Of a stretch of DNA of 64,000 bases, positions 3,001-54,119 are shown piece after piece. The position numbers and the translations under genes were made by a program. The number at the start of each line of letters is the position of its first letter. The stretch's first letter is position 1. This stretch comes from Auanema rhodensis (Eukaryota; Animalia; Nematoda): assembly GCA_964057225.1 (NCBI GenBank), contig OZ059899.1:19530001-19594000 (forward strand), written 5' to 3'. The notes below the pieces were generated by a model, which was given only the letters and a program-made list of their open reading frames with translations, had not been told where the DNA came from and searched no databases.

Positions 3001-6000
3001 TTAGGTATGATCGTTTGAAAAATGATGCATTAGTGTATGTTGAGTTTCCATGTACACTCAACATTGCTTCCAAAAACATTTTGACAAAAATTTTTCCGAA
3101 AAATTTCGAAAAAATTTCGCAAAAAGTAGATGTTTTTAGATTTTTTTTTTCAAGGCAAAGACGATGGACAATGTTATTCAACGAAAAAATTATTTCTGCA
3201 GGGTGAAAATCGAGGATATAAGTGTGAACTTATATCAGTTGATATCTCGGTGCATTTTTAAGCTAGCGCAAATCTGATAACACAGATCGACGCAGCTTGA
3301 AAATCCGCATCAAATGCACTATACAACAGTGAGAAACGCTTAATACAAAAATTAGTTATGATCGTTTGAAAAATGATGCATTAGTGTATGTTGAGTTTCC
3401 ATGTACACTCAACATTGCTTCCAAAAACATTTTGACAAAAATTTTTCCGAAAAATTTCGAAAAAATTTCGCAAAAAGTAAATGTTTTTAGATTCCTTTTT
3501 TCAAGGCAAAGACGATGGACAATGTTATTCAACGAAAAAATTATTTCTGCAGGGTGAAAATCGAGGATATAAGTGTGAACTTATATCAGTTGATATCTCG
3601 GTGCATTTTTAAGCTAGCGCAAATCTGATAACACAGATCGACGCAGCTTAAAAATCCGCATCGAATGCACTATACTGCATTGAGAAACGCTTAATACAAA
3701 AGTTAGTTATGATCGTTTGAAAAATGATGCATTAGTGTATGTTGAGTTTCCATGTACACTCAACATTGCTTCCAAAAACATTTTGACAAAAATTTTTCCG
3801 AAAAATTTTAAAATAATTTCGCAAAAAGTAGATGTTTTTAGATTCCTTTTTTCAAGGCAAAGACGATGGACAATGTTATTCAACGAAAAAATTATTTCTG
3901 CAGGGTGAAAATCGAGGATATAAGTGTGAACTTATATCAGTTGATATCTCGGTGCATTTTTAAGCTAGCGCAAATCTGATAACACAGATCAACGCAGCTT
4001 AAAAATCCGCATCGAATGCACTATACAACATTGAGAAACGCTTAATACAAAAATTAGTTATGATCGTTTGAAAAATGATGCATTAGTGTATGTTGAGTTT
4101 CCATGTACACTCAACATTGCTTCCAAAAACATTTTGACAAAAATTTTTTCGAAAAATTTTAAAATAATTTCGCAAAAAGTAGATGTTTTTAGATTCCTTA
4201 TTTCAAGGCAAAGACGATGGACAATGTTATTCAACGAAAAAATTAATTCTGCAGGGTGAAAATCAAGGATATAAGTGTGAACTTATATCAGTTGATATCT
4301 CGGTGCATTTTTAAGCTAGCGCAAATCTGATAACACAGATCGACGCAGCTTGAAAATCCGCATCAAATGCACTATACAACATTGAGAAACGCTTAATACA
4401 AAAATTAGTTATGATCGTTTGAAAAATGATGCATTAGTGTATGTTGAGTTTCCATGTACACTCAACATTGCTTCCAAAAACATTTTGACAAAAATTTTTC
4501 CGAAAAATTTCGAAAAAATTTCGCAAAAAGTAAATGTTTTTAGATTCCTTTTTTCAAGGCAAAGACGATGGACAATGTTATTCAACGAAAAAATTAATTC
4601 TGCAGGGTGAAAATCGAGGATATAAGTGTGAACTTATATCAGTTGATATCTCGGTGCATTTTTAAGCTAGCGCAAATCTGATAACACAGATCGACGCAGC
4701 TTGAAAATCCGCATCAAATGCACTATACAACATTGAGAAACGCTTAATACAAAAATTAGTTATGATCGTTTGAAAAATGATGCATTAGTGTATGTTGAGT
4801 TTCCATGTACACTCAACATTGCTTCCAAAAACATTTTGACAAAAATTTTTCCGAAAAATTTTAAAATAATTTCGCAAAAAGTAGATGTTTTTAGATTCCT
4901 TTTTTCAAGGCAAAGACGATGGACAATGTTATTCAACGAAAAAATTATTTCTGCAGGGTGAAAATCGAGGATATAAGTGTGAACTTATATCAGTTGAAAT
5001 CTCGGTGCATTTTTAAGCTAGCGCAAATCTGATAACACAGATCGACGCAGCTTAAAAATCCGCATCGAATGCACTATACAACATTGAGAAACGCTTAATA
5101 AAAAAATTAGTTATGATCGTTTGAAAAATGAAGCATTAGTGTATGTTGAGTTTCCATGTACACTCAACATAGCTTCCAAAAACATTTTGACAAAAATTTT
5201 TCCGAAAAATTTCAAAATAAATTTGCAAAAAGTAGATGTTTTTAGATTCCTTTTTTCAAGGCAAAGACGATGGACAATGTTATTCAACGAAAAAATTATT
5301 TCTGCAGGGTGAAAATCGAGGATATAAGTGTGAACTTATATCAGTTGAAATCTCGGTGCAATTTTAAGCTAGCGCAAATCTGATAATACAGATCGACGCA
5401 GCTTAAAAATCCGCATCGAATGCACTATACTGCATTGAGAAACGCTTAATACAAAAGTTAGTTATGATCGTTTGAAAAATGATGCATTAGTGTATGTTGA
5501 GTTTCCATGTACACTCAACATTGCTTCCAAAAACATTTTGACAAAAATTTTTCCGAAAAATTTCGAAAAAATTTTGCAAAAAGTAGATGTTTTTAGATTC
5601 TTTTTTTCAAGGCAAAGACGATGGACAATGTTATTCAACGAAAAAATTATTTCTGCAGGGTGAAAATCGAGGATATAAGTGTGAACTTATATCAGTTGAT
5701 ATCTCGGTGCATTTTTAAGCTAGCGCAAATCTGATAACACAGATCGACGCAGCTTAAAAATCCGCATCGAATGCACTATACTGCATTGAGAAACGCTTAA
5801 TACAAAAGTTAGTTATGATCGTTTGAAAAATGATGCATTAGTGTATGTTGAGTTTCCATGTACACTCAACATTGCTTCCAAAAACATTTTGACAAAAATT
5901 TTTCCGAAAAATTTTAAAATAATTTCGCAAAAAGTAGATGTTTTTAGATTCCTTTTTTCAAGGCAAAGACGATGGACAATGTTATTCAACGAAAAATTTA

Positions 6001-21599: not shown

Positions 21600-24500
21600 C
21601 AAAAATTAGTTATGATCGTTTGAAAAATGATGCATTAGTGTATGTTGAGTTTCCATGTACACTCAACATTGCTTCCAAAAACATTTTGACAAAAATTTTT
21701 CCGAAAAATTTCAAAATAATTTCGCGAAAAGTAGATGTTTTTAGATTCCTTTTTTCAAGGCAAAGACGATGGACAATGTTATTCAACGAAAAAATTATTT
21801 CTGCAGGGTGAAAATCGAGGATATAAGTGTGAACTTATATCAGTTGAAATCTCGGTGCATTTTTAAGGTAGCGCAAATCTGATAATACAGATCGACGCAG
21901 CTTAAAAATCCGCATCGAATGCACTATACTGCATTGAGAAACGCTTAATACAAAAGTTAGTTATGATCGTTTGAAAAATGATGCATTAGTGTATGTTGAG
22001 TTTCCATGTACACTCAACATTGCTTCCAAAAACATTTTGACAAATTTTTTCCGAAAAATTTTAAAATAATTTCGCAAAAAGTAGATGTTTTTAGATTCCT
22101 TTTTTCAAGGCAAAGACGATGGACAATGTTATTCAACGAAAAAATTATTTCTGCAGGGTGAAAATCGAGGATATAAGTGTGAACTTATATCAGTTGAAAT
22201 CTCGGTGCATTTTTAAGCTAGCGCAAATCTGATAACACAGATCGACGCAGCTTAAAAATTCGCATCGAATACACTATACAACATTGAGAAACGCTTAATA
22301 CAAAAATTAGTTATGATCGTTTGAAAAATGATGCATTAGTGTATGTTGAGTTTCCATGTACACTCAACATTGCTTCCAAAAACATTTTGACAAAAATGTT
22401 TCCGAAAAATTTCAAAATAATTTCGCGAAAAGTAGATGTTTTTAGATTCCTTTTTTCAAGGCAAAGACGATGGACAATGTTATTCAACGAAAAAATTATT
22501 TCTGCAGGGTGAAAATCGAGGATATAAGTGTGAACTTATATCAGTTGAAATCTCGGTGCATTTTTAAGCTAGCGCAAATCTGATAACACAGATCGACGCA
22601 GCTTAAAAATCCGCATCGAATGCACTATACAACATTGAGAAACGCTTAATACAAAAATTAGTTATGATCGTTTGAAAAATGATGCATTAGTGTATGTTGA
22701 AGTTCCATGTACACTCAACATTGCTTCCAAAAACATTTTGACAAAAATTTTTCCGAAAAATTTCAAAATAATTTCGCGAAAAGTAGATGTTTTTAGATTC
22801 CTTTTTTCAAGGCAAAGACGATGGACAATGTTATTCAACGAAAAAATTATTTCTGCAGGGTGAAAATCGAGGATATAAGTGTGAACTTATATCAGTTGAA
22901 ATCTCGGTGCATTTTTAAGCTAGCGCAAATCTGATAATACAGATCGACGCAGCTTAAAAATCCGCATCGAATGCACTATACTGCATTGAGAAACGCTTAA
23001 TACAAAAGTTAGTTATGATCGTTTGAAAAATGATGCATTAGTGTATGTTGAGTTTCCATGTACACTCAACATTGCTTCCAAAAACATTTTGACAAATTTT
23101 TTCCGAAAAATTTTAAAATAATTTCGCAAAAAGTAGATGTTTTTAGATTCCTTTTTTCAAGGCAAAGACGATGGACAATGTTATTCAACGAAAAAATTAT
23201 TTCTGCAGGGTGAAAATCGAGGATATAAGTGTGAACTTATATCAGTTGAAATCTCGGTGCATTTTTAAGCTAGCGCAAATCTGATAACACAGATCGACGC
23301 AGCTTAAAAATTCGCATCGAATGCACTATACAACATTGAGAAACGCTTAATACAAAAATTAGTTATGATCGTTTGAAAAATGATGCATTAGTGTATGTTG
23401 AGTTTCCATGTACACTCAACATTGCTTCCAAAAACATTTTGACAAAAATGTTTCCGAAAAATTTCAAAATAATTTCGCGAAAAGTAGATGTTTTTAGATT
23501 CCTTTTTTCAAGGCAAAGACGATGGACAATGTTATTCAACGAAAAAATTATTTCTGCAGGGTGAAAATCGAGGATATAAGTGTGAACTTATATCAGTTGA
23601 AATCTCGGTGCATTTTTAAGCTAGCGCAAATCTGATAACACAGATCGACGCAGCTTAAAAATCCGCATCGAATGCACTATACAACATTGAGAAACGCTTA
23701 ATACAAAAATTAGTTATGATCGTTTGAAAAATGATGCATTAGTGTATGTTGAAGTTCCATGTACACTCAACATTGCTTCCAAAAACATTTTGACAAAGAT
23801 TTTTCCGAAAAATTTCAAAATAATTTCGCGAAAAGTAGATGTTTTTAGATTCCTTTTTTCAAGGCAAAGACGATGGACAATGTTATTCAACGAAAAAATT
23901 ATTTCTGCAGGGTGAAAATCGAGGATATAAGTGTGAACTTATATCAGTTGAAATCTCGGTGCATTTTTAAGCTAGCGCAAATCTGATAATACAGATCGAC
24001 GCAGCTTAAAAATCCGCATCGAATGCACTATACTGCATTGAGAAACGCTTAATACAAAAGTTAGTTATGATCGTTTGAAAAATGATGCATTAGTGTATGT
24101 TGAGTTTCCATGTACACTCAACATTGCTTCCAAAAACATTTTGACAAATTTTTTCCGAAAAATTTTAAAATAATTTCGCAAAAAGTAGATGTTTTTAGAT
24201 TCCTTTTTTCAAGGCAAAGACGATGGACAATGTTATTCAACGAAAAAATTATTTCTGCAGGGTGAAAATCGAGGATATAAGTGTGAACTTATATCAGTTG
24301 ATATCTCGGTGCATTTTTAAGCTAGCGCAAATCTGATAACACAGATCGACGCAGCTTAAAAATTCGCATCGAATGCACTATACAACATTGAGAAACGCTT
24401 AATACAAAAATTAGTTATGATAGTTTGAGAAATGATGCATTAGTGTATGTTGAGTTTCCATGTACACTCAACATTGCTTCCAAAAACATTTTGACAAAAA

Positions 24501-32040: not shown

Positions 32041-32660
32041 AAGCTAGCGCAAATCTGATAACACAGATCGACGCAGCTTAAAAATCCGCATCGAATGCAC
32101 TATACTACATTGAGAAACGCTTAATACAAAAATTAGTTATGATCGTTTGAAAAATGATGCATTAGTGTATGTTGAGTTTCCATGTACACTCAACATTGCT
32201 TCCAAAAACATTTTTACAAAAATTTTTCCGAAAAATTTCAAAATAATTTCGCAAAAAGTAGATGTTTTTAGATTCCTTTTTTCAAGGCAAAGACGATGGA
32301 CAATGTTATTCAACGAAAAAATTAATTCTGCAGGGTGAAAATCGAGGATATAAGTGTGAACTTATATCAGTTGATATCTCGGTGCATTTTAAAGCTAGCG
32401 CAAATCTGATAACACAGATCGACGCAGCTTAAAAATCCGCATCGAATGCACTATACTACATTGAGAAACGCTTAATACAAAAATTAGTTATGATCGTTTG
32501 AAAAATGATGCATTAGTGTATGTTGAGTTTCCATGTACACTCAACATTGCTTCCAAAAACATTTTTACAAAAATTTTTCCGAAAAATTTCAAAATAATTT
32601 CGCAAAAAGTAGATGTTTTTAGATTCCTTTTTTCAAGGCAAAGACGATGGACAATGTTAT

Positions 32661-32672
32661 GATTAGACAATG
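32661..32672. other. 12-bp junction insert GATTAGACAATG between the two satellite arrays
   Basis: These bases match neither the expected continuation of the 351-bp monomer (TCAACGAAAA) nor the bases that normally precede CCATGA in the 176-bp monomer (GGTGCATGGTAA). Confidence 0.93.
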
Positions 32673-35600
32673 CCATGATTTTGAAATTTACGTGAACTTT
32701 AATTTATGCTAATTAAATGTACACATGGTGTGCACTCGGTATGTAACTCGCTTCACGTGAAAGATAAAGAGATGCGGTTTTCGAAATTAGATTCCCCATG
32801 TCCATATTAATCTAAAAACAAATTTTTATTGATATTGGTGCATGGTAACCATGACTTTGAAATTTACGTGAACTTTATTTTATGCTACATAAATGTACAC
32901 GTGGTGTGCACTCGGTATGTATCTCGCTTCACGTGAAAGAAAAAGAGATGCGGTTTCCAAAATTAGATTCCCCATGTCCATATTAGTCTAAAAACAGTTT
33001 TTTACTGATATTGGTGCATGGTAACCATGATTTTGAAATTTACGTGAACTTTAATTTATGCTAATTAAATGTACACATGGTGTGCACTCGGTATGTAACT
33101 CGCTTCACGTGAAAGATAAAGAGATGCGGTTTTCAAAATTAGATTCCCCATGTCCATATTAGTCTAAAAACAAATTTTAATGATATTGGTGCATGGTAAC
33201 CATGACTTTGAATTTTACGTGAACTTTAATTTATGCTAATTAAATGTACACGTGATGTGCACTTGGTATGTAACTTGCTTCACGTGAAAGATAAAGAGAT
33301 GCGGTTTTCAAAATTAGACTCCCCATGTCCATATTAGTCTAAAAACAAATTTTTATTGATATTGGTGCATGGTAACCATGACTTTGAAATTTACGTGAAC
33401 TTTAATTTATGCTAATTAAATGTACACGTGGTGTGCACTCGGTATGTAACTCGCTTCACGTGAAAGATAAAGAGATGCGGTTTTTAAAATTAGACTCCCC
33501 ATGTCCATATTAGTCTAAAAACAAATTTTTATTGATATTGGTGCATGGTAACCATGACTTTGAAATTTACGTGAACTTTAATTTATGCTAATTAAATGTA
33601 CACGTGGTGTGCACTCGGTATGTAACTCGCTTCACGTGAAAGATAAAGAGATGCGGTTTTTAAAATTAGATTCCCCATGTCCATATTAGTCTGAAAACAA
33701 TTTTTTACTGATATTGGTGCATGGTAACCATGACTTTGAAATTTACGTGAACTTTAATTTATGCTAATTAAATGTACACGTGGTGTGCACTCGGTATGTA
33801 ACTCGCTTCACGTGAAAGATAAAGAGATGCGGTTTTTAAAATTAGATTCCCCATGTCCATATTAGTCTGAAAACAATTTTTTACTGATATTGGTGCATGG
33901 TAACCATGACTTTGAAATTTACGTGAACTTTAATTTATGCTAATTAAATGTACAAGTGATGTGCACTTGGTATGTAACTCGCTTCACGTGAAAGATAAGG
34001 AGATGCGGTTTTCACAATTAGATTCCCCATGTCCATATTAGTCTAAAAACAAATTTTTATTGATATTGGTGCATGGTAACCATGACTTTGAAATCTACGT
34101 GAACTTTAATTTATGCTAATTAAATGTACACGTGATGTGCACTTGGTATGTAACTCGCTTCACGTGAAAGATAAAGAGATGCGGTTTTTAAAATTAGACT
34201 CCCCATGTCCATATTAGTCTAAAAACAAATTTTTATTGATATTGGTGCATGGTAACCATGACTTTGAAATTTACGTGAACTTTAATTTATGCTAATTAAA
34301 TGTACACGTGGTGTGCACTCGGTATGTAACTCGCTTCACGTGAAAGATAAAGAGATGCGGTTTTTAAAATTAGATTCCCCATGTCCATACTAGTCTGAAA
34401 ACAATTTTTTACTGATATTGGTGCATGGTAACCATGACTTTGAAATTTACGTGAACTTTAATTTATGCTAATTAAATGTACACGTGATGTGCACTTGGTA
34501 TGTAACTTGCTTCACGTGAAAGATAAAGAGATGCGGTTTTCAAAATTAGATTTCCCATGTCCATATTAGTCTTAAAACAAATTTTTATTGATATTGGTGC
34601 ATGGTAACCATGACTTTGAAATTTACGTGAACTTTAATTTATGCTAATTAAATGTACACGTGGTGTGCACTCGGTATGTAACTCGCTTCACGTGAAAGAT
34701 AAAGAGATGCGGTTTTTAAAATTAGATTCCCCATGTCCATACTAGTCTGAAAACAATTTTTTACTGATATTGGTGCATGGTAACCATGACTTTGAAATTT
34801 ACGTGAACTTTAATTTATGCTAATTAAATGTACACGTGATGTGCACTTGGTATGTAACTCGCTTCACGTGAAAGATAAAGAGATGCGGTTTTTAAAATTA
34901 GATTCCCCATGTCCATATTAGTCTAGAAACAAATTTTTATTGATATTGGTGCATGGTAACCATGACTTTGAAATTTACGTGAACTTTAATTTATGCTAAT
35001 TAAATGTACACGTGATGTGCACTTGGTATGTAACTTGCTTCACGTGAAAGATAAAGAGATGCGGTTTTCAAAATTAGATTCTTCATGTCCATATCAGTCT
35101 TAAAACAAATTTTCATTGATATTGGTGCATGGTAACCATGACTTTGAAATCTACGTGAACTTTAATTTATGCTAATTAAATGTACACGTGATGTGCACTT
35201 GGTATGTAACTCGCTTCACGTGAAAGATAAAGAGATGCGGTTTTTAAAATTAGACTCCCCATGTCCATATTAGTCTAAAAACAAATTTTTATTGATATTG
35301 GTGCATGGTAACCATGACTTTGAAATTTACGTGAACTTTAATTTATGCTAATTAAATGTACACGTGGTGTGCACTCGGTATGTACCTCGCTTCACGTGAA
35401 AGATAAAGAGATGCGGTTTTTGAAATTAGATTCCCCATGTCCATATTAGTCTGAAAACAATTTTTTACTGATATTGGTGCATGGTAACCATGACTTTGAA
35501 ATTTACGTGAACTTTAATTTATGCTAATTAAATGTACACGTGGTGTGCACTCGGTATGTAACTCGCTTCACGTGAAAGATAAAGAGATGCGGTTTTTAAA

Positions 35601-52650: not shown

Positions 52651-54089
52651 ATAAAGAGATGCGGTTTCCAAAATTAGATTCCCCATGTCCATATTAGTCT
52701 AAAAACAAATTTTTATCGATATTGGTGCATGGTAACCATGACTTTGAAATTTACGTGAACTTTATTTTATGCTACATAAATGTACACGTGGTGTGCACTC
52801 GGTATGTATCTCGCTTCACGTGAAAGATAAAGAGATGCGGTTTCCAAAATTAGATTCCCCATGTCCATATTAGTCTAAAAACAGTTTTTTACTGATATTG
52901 GTGCATGGTAACCATGATTTTGAAATTTACGTGAACTTTATTTTATGCTACATAAATGTACACGTGGTGTGCACTCGGTATGTATCTCGCTTCACGTGAA
53001 AGATAAAGAGATGCGGTTTCCAAAATTAGATTCCCCATGTCCATATTAGTCTAAAAACAAATTTTTATTGTTATTGGTGCATGGTAACCATGATTTTGAA
53101 ATTTACGTGAACTTTAATTTATGCTAATTAAATTTACACATGGTGTGCACTTGGTATGTAACTTGCTTCACGTGAAAGATAAAGAGATGCGGTTTTCAAA
53201 ATTAGATTCCCCATGTCCATATTAGTCTAAAAACAAATTTTTATTGATATTGGTGCATGGTAACCATGACTTTGAAATTTACGTGAACTTTAATTTATGC
53301 TAATTAAATGTACACGTGATGTGCACTTGGTATGTAACTTGCTTCACGTGAAAGATAAAGAGATGCAGTTCTCAAAATTAGATTCCCCATGTCCATATTA
53401 GTCTAAAAACAAATTTTTATTGATATTGGTGCATGGTAACCATGACTTTGAAATTTACGTGAACTTTAATTTATGCTAATTAAATGTACACGTGATGTGC
53501 ACTTGGTATGTAACTTGCTTCACGTGAAAGATAAAGAGATGCGGTTTTCAAAATTAGATTCCCCATGTCCATATTAGTCTTAAAACAAATTTTTATTGAT
53601 ATTGGTGCATGGTAACCATGACTTTGAAATTTACGTGAACTTTAATTTATGCTAATTAAATGTACACGTGATGTGCACTTGGTATGTAACTTGCTTCACG
53701 TGAAAGATAAAGAGATGCGGTTTTCAAAATTAGATTCCCCATGTCCATATTAGTCTTAAAACAAATTTTTATTGATATTGGTGCATGGTAACCATGACTT
53801 TGAAATTTACGTGAACTTTAATTTATGCTAATTAAATGTACACGTGGTGTGCACCCGGTATGTAACTCGCTTCACGTGAAAGATAAAGAGATGAGGTTTT
53901 CCCAATTAGATTCCCCATGTCCATATTAGTCTAAAAACAAATTTTTATCGATATTGGTGCATGGTAACCATGACTTTGAAATTTACGTGAACTTTAATTT
54001 ATGCTAATTAAATGTACACGTGGTGTGCACCCGGTATGTAACTCGCTTCACGTGAAAGATAAAGAGATGAGGTTTTCCCAATTAGATTC

Positions 54090-54119
54090 CCCATGTCCAT
54101 ATTACCCATGTCCATATTA
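54090..54119 (+). repeat. 15-bp direct tandem duplication (CCCATGTCCATATTA x2) creating one 191-bp monomer
   Basis: Copies lie at 54090-54104 and 54105-54119. The flanking CATGG landmarks at 53960 and 54151 are 191 bp apart. Confidence 0.95.

Follow-up and report, generated by a model that had tools for sequence, protein, structure and literature searches.

The closest described setting for the DNA analyzed here is the genome of the nematode Auanema rhodense (Auanema rhodensis in the assembly record), in which a 180-Mb germline genome is distributed over seven chromosomes, about 61% of it is eliminated from somatic cells, and the autosome ends carry multi-megabase, germline-restricted blocks of two autosome-specific tandem repeats, AT-1 and AT-2 (bioRxiv 10.64898/2026.08.27.747507). 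The word "junction" is absent from the main text of that paper, a literature search for satellites of 351 bp and 176 bp together found no papers, and the base-level internal architecture of these autosome-terminal blocks was previously undescribed. The present study concerns a stretch of 64,000 nucleotides (the window; positions 19,530,001 to 19,594,000 of the forward strand of contig OZ059899.1, here C7, in assembly GCA_964057225.1), in which an array of a 351-bp satellite, A, gives way to an array of a 176-bp satellite, B, at a junction that we call J1. J1 is a base-precise, non-homologous join, and the few filler bases inserted there match the sequence directly on either side. The junction occurs twice on the same chromosome as part of a larger composite segment.

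Centromeric satellites in complete assemblies are known to grow by segmental duplication combined with layered expansion inside the arrays. The arrays studied here resemble them in that composite segments with unique junctions are present in multiple copies and in that conserved junction cores lie amid arrays with an apparent turnover by unequal exchange, whereas the DNA in question is reportedly eliminated from the soma, belongs to a nematode with holocentric relatives, and is no centromere. The scar itself recalls another system. In the germline of Caenorhabditis elegans, polymerase theta-mediated end joining dominates error-prone break repair and leaves "delins" scars with templated insertions (Roerink 2014, PMC4032859; van Schendel 2015, PMC4490562). 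Shared with those scars are a short insert identical to break-proximal DNA, homology of 0–2 nt, a nematode germline, and the presence of a polymerase theta-like gene, while the difference is that J1 joins two satellite arrays instead of closing a small deletion and was later duplicated within a large segment, and a dependence on polymerase theta is putative here.

Results

Satellite A occupies positions 1–32660 of the window on the plus strand, as delimited by Tandem Repeats Finder (TRF), the sequence, and monomer statistics, and satellite B occupies positions 32673–64000 on the same strand, as delimited by TRF, by matches to the published fluorescence in situ hybridization (FISH) probe for AT-1, and by the positions of a second junction, J2, described below. 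Between the two lies a 12-bp filler, GATTAGACAATG (32661–32672, plus strand), that is foreign to both satellites. The last A monomer breaks off 18 bases into the TRF phase, ending in GGACAATGTTAT, where other monomers go on with TCAACG, and the first bases of array B are CCATGA, which in other B monomers is preceded by GCATGGTAA. The filler agrees with the expected continuation of A at 4 of 12 positions and with the B sequence preceding its start phase at 2 of 12. Two tracts, each with an identical counterpart no more than 22 bp from the junction, together account for 11 of the 12 filler bases. The tract ATGATT (32659–32664), composed of two bases of the A flank and four of the filler, is the same as 32675–32680 in the first B monomer, its putative template, and the tract GACAATG (32666–32672) is the same as 32650–32656 in the last A monomer, likewise a putative template; all of these lie on the plus strand. 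Microhomology that could have primed synthesis is present for the ATGATT tract only, in the form of the 2-nt AT. The description given by the sequence-only reading, of a base-precise junction with a 12-bp insertion whose parts copy the right and left flanks, is thus borne out by the sequence, the array limits, and both identities.

The strength of this resemblance was estimated by simulation, in which random 12-mers of the local base composition, or shuffled versions of the filler, were placed between the real flanks and scored when flank words of at least 6 bases covered at least 11 bases. With ranges spanning both null models and searches of one or both strands, P was 0.002–0.006 when templates were restricted to 25 bp from the junction, 0.008–0.046 within 50 bp, and 0.024–0.106 within 100 bp. 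Templating of the filler by its flanks therefore has moderate support, the match being above chance but not overwhelming. As to other origins, inspection of the sequence showed neither a mobile element nor a target-site duplication at J1, in keeping with the earlier statement that no transposon lies there; the nearest element is found 385 bp from the other copy of the junction. The 12-mer occurs once in the window and has eight exact copies in the 181-Mb genome, two of which are the J1 copies and six of which are scattered single sites. It belongs to no repeated family, which rules out a third repeat as the source of the filler, one of the outcomes that would have undone the original interpretation.

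The sequence-only reading had entertained that the junction might be unique, amplified, or polymorphic, and it proved not to be unique. Across the 181 Mb, a 90-bp probe found J1 in exactly two places, as did a 25-mer search allowing 3 mismatches (matches at C7:19562654 and C7:17474627). The copies, at C7:19562661 in the window and at C7:17474634 (copy 2), lie on the same strand and are 2,088,027 bp apart. They share a core of 326 bp (32484–32809 of the window, plus strand) that is 100% identical, and beyond it the divergence between them is no different from that seen between array monomers in general. When the B flanks of the two copies were compared monomer by monomer, the identity matrix gave no diagonal signal (0.962 in register 0 and 0.953–0.967 in the others), and this absence rules out collinear paralogy of the copies past the core. 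In copy 2, the initial 385 bp of B match the window exactly at two internal positions, 47103 and 52032. At that distance to the right of J1, copy 2 carries a 4.58-kb insertion of a long interspersed nuclear element (LINE; C7:17475031–17479613) whose tail is (AAAT)n and whose target duplication, TAATTT, is 6 bp long; in the window copy this site is empty. Its second open reading frame (ORF2), of 935 aa, is open throughout and has endonuclease and reverse-transcriptase domains; ORF1, of 346 aa, gave no Pfam match. Because the LINE is present in copy 2 and absent from the window copy, it was inserted after the duplication. Likewise, the existence of two J1 copies places the joining before the segmental duplication, and the occurrence of the same 12-bp filler at two loci with different surroundings excludes an assembler misjoin, a possibility raised when the junction was first noted.

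Both J1 copies lead into B and then into J2, at which B stops at monomer phase 72 (ending GGTATGT) and is followed by a filler, TGGTA, and then by A in inverted orientation. In the window copy, array B extends past the window, with a total of 46.55 kb, and ends at J2 at C7:19609222, 46.5 kb to the right of J1; in copy 2, the distance from J1 to J2 is 26.9 kb, with the J2 filler at C7:17501562, and B comprises 22.3 kb when the LINE is excluded. J2 has four matches, all on C7 and on one strand (17501550, 19416536 with 2 mismatches, 19609211, and 20388040), whose perfectly identical core is only about 200–280 bp. The J2 filler together with the preceding T reads TTGGTA and repeats a TTGGTA that begins 8 bases leftward; for this resemblance, P was 0.03–0.04 within 25 bp. 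Since the order J1, B, J2 is the same in both copies, we conclude that A(+)-J1-B(+)-J2-A(-), where the signs denote orientation, was duplicated as one unit. The junction cores would have escaped overwriting by array exchange or conversion because no other template for them exists, and it is a possibility that they are protected from the homogenization around them.

The structure of the composite segment bears on how B came to lie between the A arrays. The first base of B is at phase 1 of the 176-bp monomer and the last is at phase 72, and the A arrays on its two sides are mutually inverted and about 5% diverged. These features do not fit the re-insertion of a circular array (extrachromosomal circular DNA, eccDNA), which the sequence-only reading had offered as one route to the fusion. 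Nor do they fit an insertion with a target-site duplication, and no such duplication is present; at the far end of B stand J2 and inverted A. The two A breakpoints are 28 bp apart in opposite orientation, an arrangement that suggests a fold-back inverted duplication and that has a chance of about 16% of arising at random. A fold-back is not supported: the arms share no mirrored variants, and whichever register is compared they are 94.5–95.3% identical, register 0 giving no peak, as against 97.7–98.4% within A(+).

To place these junctions in the wider block, twenty 10-kb samples were taken from 17.30–19.86 Mb of the 21.47-Mb contig. All 20 were pure satellite, and blocks of A(+), A(-), and B(+) alternate across at least 2.5 Mb, with further stretches of A(-) turning up in an additional search. 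The earlier claim that the two repeats do not interleave therefore holds inside the window and fails at the scale of blocks. The A(-) arrays form a distinct subfamily, 94.5–95.3% identical to A(+) as against 97.7–98.4% within A(+). Over C7 17.30–19.86 Mb, they are about 95–96% identical to the plus-type monomer as against 97–98% among the plus arrays, and the orientation of the 351-bp satellite tracks subfamily over more than 2 Mb. At C7:17754718, a unique switch from A(+) to A(-) shows a microhomology of 2 bp, GT, and lacks a filler. Some sampled A/B boundaries fall at positions that have neither J1 nor J2, and this points to several independent joining events.

B could be identified through the published AT-1 FISH probe, which has 141 matches in B with 2 or fewer mismatches, dozens of them exact, at one per 176-bp monomer, where none are expected by chance. 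Judged by this probe, B is AT-1 of A. rhodense, and the window would accordingly lie in a terminal repeat block of an autosome that is reported to be germline-restricted. The 351-bp repeat A is probably AT-2, because the paper gives the terminal blocks as made of two repeats. In agreement with the published blocks, the probe matches exactly, the region is close to a chromosome end, and no more than two repeats are present, whereas the published account is of block-level distribution only and the present analysis finds a mosaic of blocks, orientation-specific subfamilies, and duplicated junctions.

Within the window, array A contains about 93 monomers with a mean mutual identity of 97.7%. A and B are unrelated in sequence, local alignment of their consensus monomers giving a score of 20 where shuffled sequences gave 20.3 ± 2.4, and the idea that A is a diverged dimer of B, which the lengths invite (351 ~ 2 x 176), is rejected because neither A and B nor the two halves of A are similar above shuffles. 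No degenerate array edges were seen, the monomers next to the junction being as near to consensus as interior ones. No array-wide higher-order periodicity was found, and the recurrences seen are local higher-order repeats. In A, variant monomers with small internal repeats (1316–1370 and 5528–5582) recur at 4212 bp, or 12 monomers, and others at 22024, 23076, and 24128 recur at 1052 bp, or 3 monomers; in B, long exact matches are spaced by 4929 bp, or 28 monomers. At 54086–54119, a 15-bp tandem duplication (ATTACCCATGTCCAT) within one 176-bp monomer makes the sole 191-bp monomer of array B.

The genome has a family-A DNA polymerase at a single locus, C7:15903374–15904754, split by introns and carrying motifs like those of polymerase theta. 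The locus shares its chromosome with the satellite block, and about 1.4 Mb separate it from the first satellite sample to its right, at 17.30 Mb. Of the encoded protein, a stretch of 70 aa has PDB matches to polymerase theta chains only, and a second piece of the gene gave no PDB match.

Discussion

The joining partners at J1 are non-homologous, homology at the join amounts to 0–2 nt, and the short inserts match break-adjacent sequence; in addition, the genome encodes a polymerase theta-like polymerase, and the corresponding pathway dominates error-prone repair in the germ cells of C. elegans. For these reasons, we regard polymerase theta-mediated end joining as the likeliest origin of J1, with a probability somewhat better than even. 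In such a scheme, A and B would have been fused once by non-homologous end joining, during which the 3'-end of the A side would have used the AT in the B flank for priming and been extended by GATT, and a further brief round of synthesis, templated by the A flank, would have added GACAATG before the ends were ligated. The segment consisting of J1, the B array, and J2 leading to the inverted, ~5% diverged A subfamily would then have been copied as one piece to another site on this chromosome, at a distance of 2.09 Mb. Thereafter, in-register unequal exchange or conversion would have altered the array lengths and replaced monomers to within about 150 bp of the junction, and a LINE would have inserted in one copy. 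The order of these events after the formation of J1 is our inference, and its simplest reading is that the duplication is fairly recent and that unequal exchange or conversion in register then acted within the arrays. The sequence-only reading had attributed the fusion to a single event of double-strand-break repair, and the part of that proposal that stands is a non-homologous join with a filler matching its flanks; the window need not be the site of the event because its J1 is one of two copies of the composite segment.

Several observations weigh against the involvement of polymerase theta. The criteria for templating were post hoc, fitted to a known case, and P rises to about 0.04–0.11 when templates are allowed within 100 bp. 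The filler words ATTAGA and ATTAGAC recur farther off in B monomers, at 32786 and 33314, which indicates that short matches arise easily in AT-rich repeats. For the GACAATG tract, neither strand offers a microhomology from which synthesis could be primed, and one filler base, the A at 32665, is explained by neither template. What the genome contributes to the case for polymerase theta is the presence of a polymerase domain, and a role of that polymerase at J1 is putative. Furthermore, replicative template switching yields the same type of scar, and the two cannot be told apart by sequence. The polymerase-theta signature proposed at the outset is thus upheld as far as the flank-matching fillers of J1 and J2 and the polymerase theta-like gene are concerned, and is weakened by the second tract and by this ambiguity. 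Over 32321–32842, Logan contigs, which are short and come from one data set, show a huge satellite depth and include no listed record that bridges J1, a result that speaks neither for nor against the junction.

In replicative template switching, either by fork stalling and template switching (FoSTeS) or by microhomology-mediated break-induced replication, the starting point would have been an A array in which a fork collapsed or a one-ended break arose; several short switches would have followed before replication resumed in B, with the filler as a by-product. The surroundings are of the kind that such a process might produce, being rich in switches of orientation, in junctions that recur, and in composite segments copied as large duplications, and the filler-free join of A to inverted A with its 2-bp microhomology would suit it as well. 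The tracts at J1 itself, however, are just 4–7 bases long and come from within 22 bp, a size typical of inserts made by polymerase theta; microhomology is present at only one of the switches, and nothing ties the formation of J1 to a gain in copy number, so that we consider template switching rather improbable here. Distinctly unlikely, in our estimation, is an origin by some other non-homologous pathway, or as the relic of a longer unique spacer, with the resemblance to the flanks arising by chance in AT-rich DNA. As many as 6–11% of random 12-mers do as well as the filler when templates within 100 bp on both strands are admitted, and the competing 6–7-mer matches elsewhere in B and the unprimed GACAATG tract point the same way. 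Against chance stand the closeness of both templates to the junction, with the low P values obtained at 25 bp, and the J2 filler, which is independent and also matches nearby sequence; that the 12-mer is in no repeated family speaks against both chance and a relic.

An assembly artefact, be it a chimeric join of two arrays or a false duplication, has only a very slim chance of accounting for J1. Multi-megabase satellite blocks are hard to assemble, and there is no spanning read among the listed records. One of four sampled 31-mers across the junction was nevertheless present in an indexed data set that may not be independent, since it could be the assembly's own sample, and the run search with junction words also returned two runs from unrelated organisms. 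We count J1 as real because two diverged copies exist in the assembly: the same filler and the same 326-bp core stand at two loci that differ in flanks, array lengths, and the presence of the LINE and that both lead to J2, and a misjoin would not yield the same filler twice.

Whichever pathway formed J1, the recurrence of unique junctions (J1 twice and J2 four times) shows that the repeat blocks expand by the copying of large composite segments in addition to slippage at the level of monomers, and the findings also show rapid array turnover surrounding junction cores that are short and conserved. We tentatively extend this to the proposal, which may well prove wrong, that the terminal blocks grew largely through repeated segmental duplication of composite segments of A, B, and inverted A, and that J1, J2, and other junctions serve as heritable "barcodes" of that growth. 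If this were true, the barcodes would allow the whole history of amplification to be rebuilt, along with the repair pathway at work in DNA destined for elimination. J1 on its own is an ordinary repair scar of a known kind, and its value is in its setting, in blocks reportedly discarded from the soma. Recurrent junctions are markers for validating assemblies of satellite blocks, for comparing strains, and for following the amplification of blocks, and they could show which repair pathways shape DNA that is free of somatic constraint.

Elsewhere in the genome, at C3:6.74–7.10 Mb, a large cluster is formed by tandem genes for SL1-like spliced-leader RNA, which score 55–62 bits against an Rfam cut-off of 75 and are spaced at multiples of about 252 bp.

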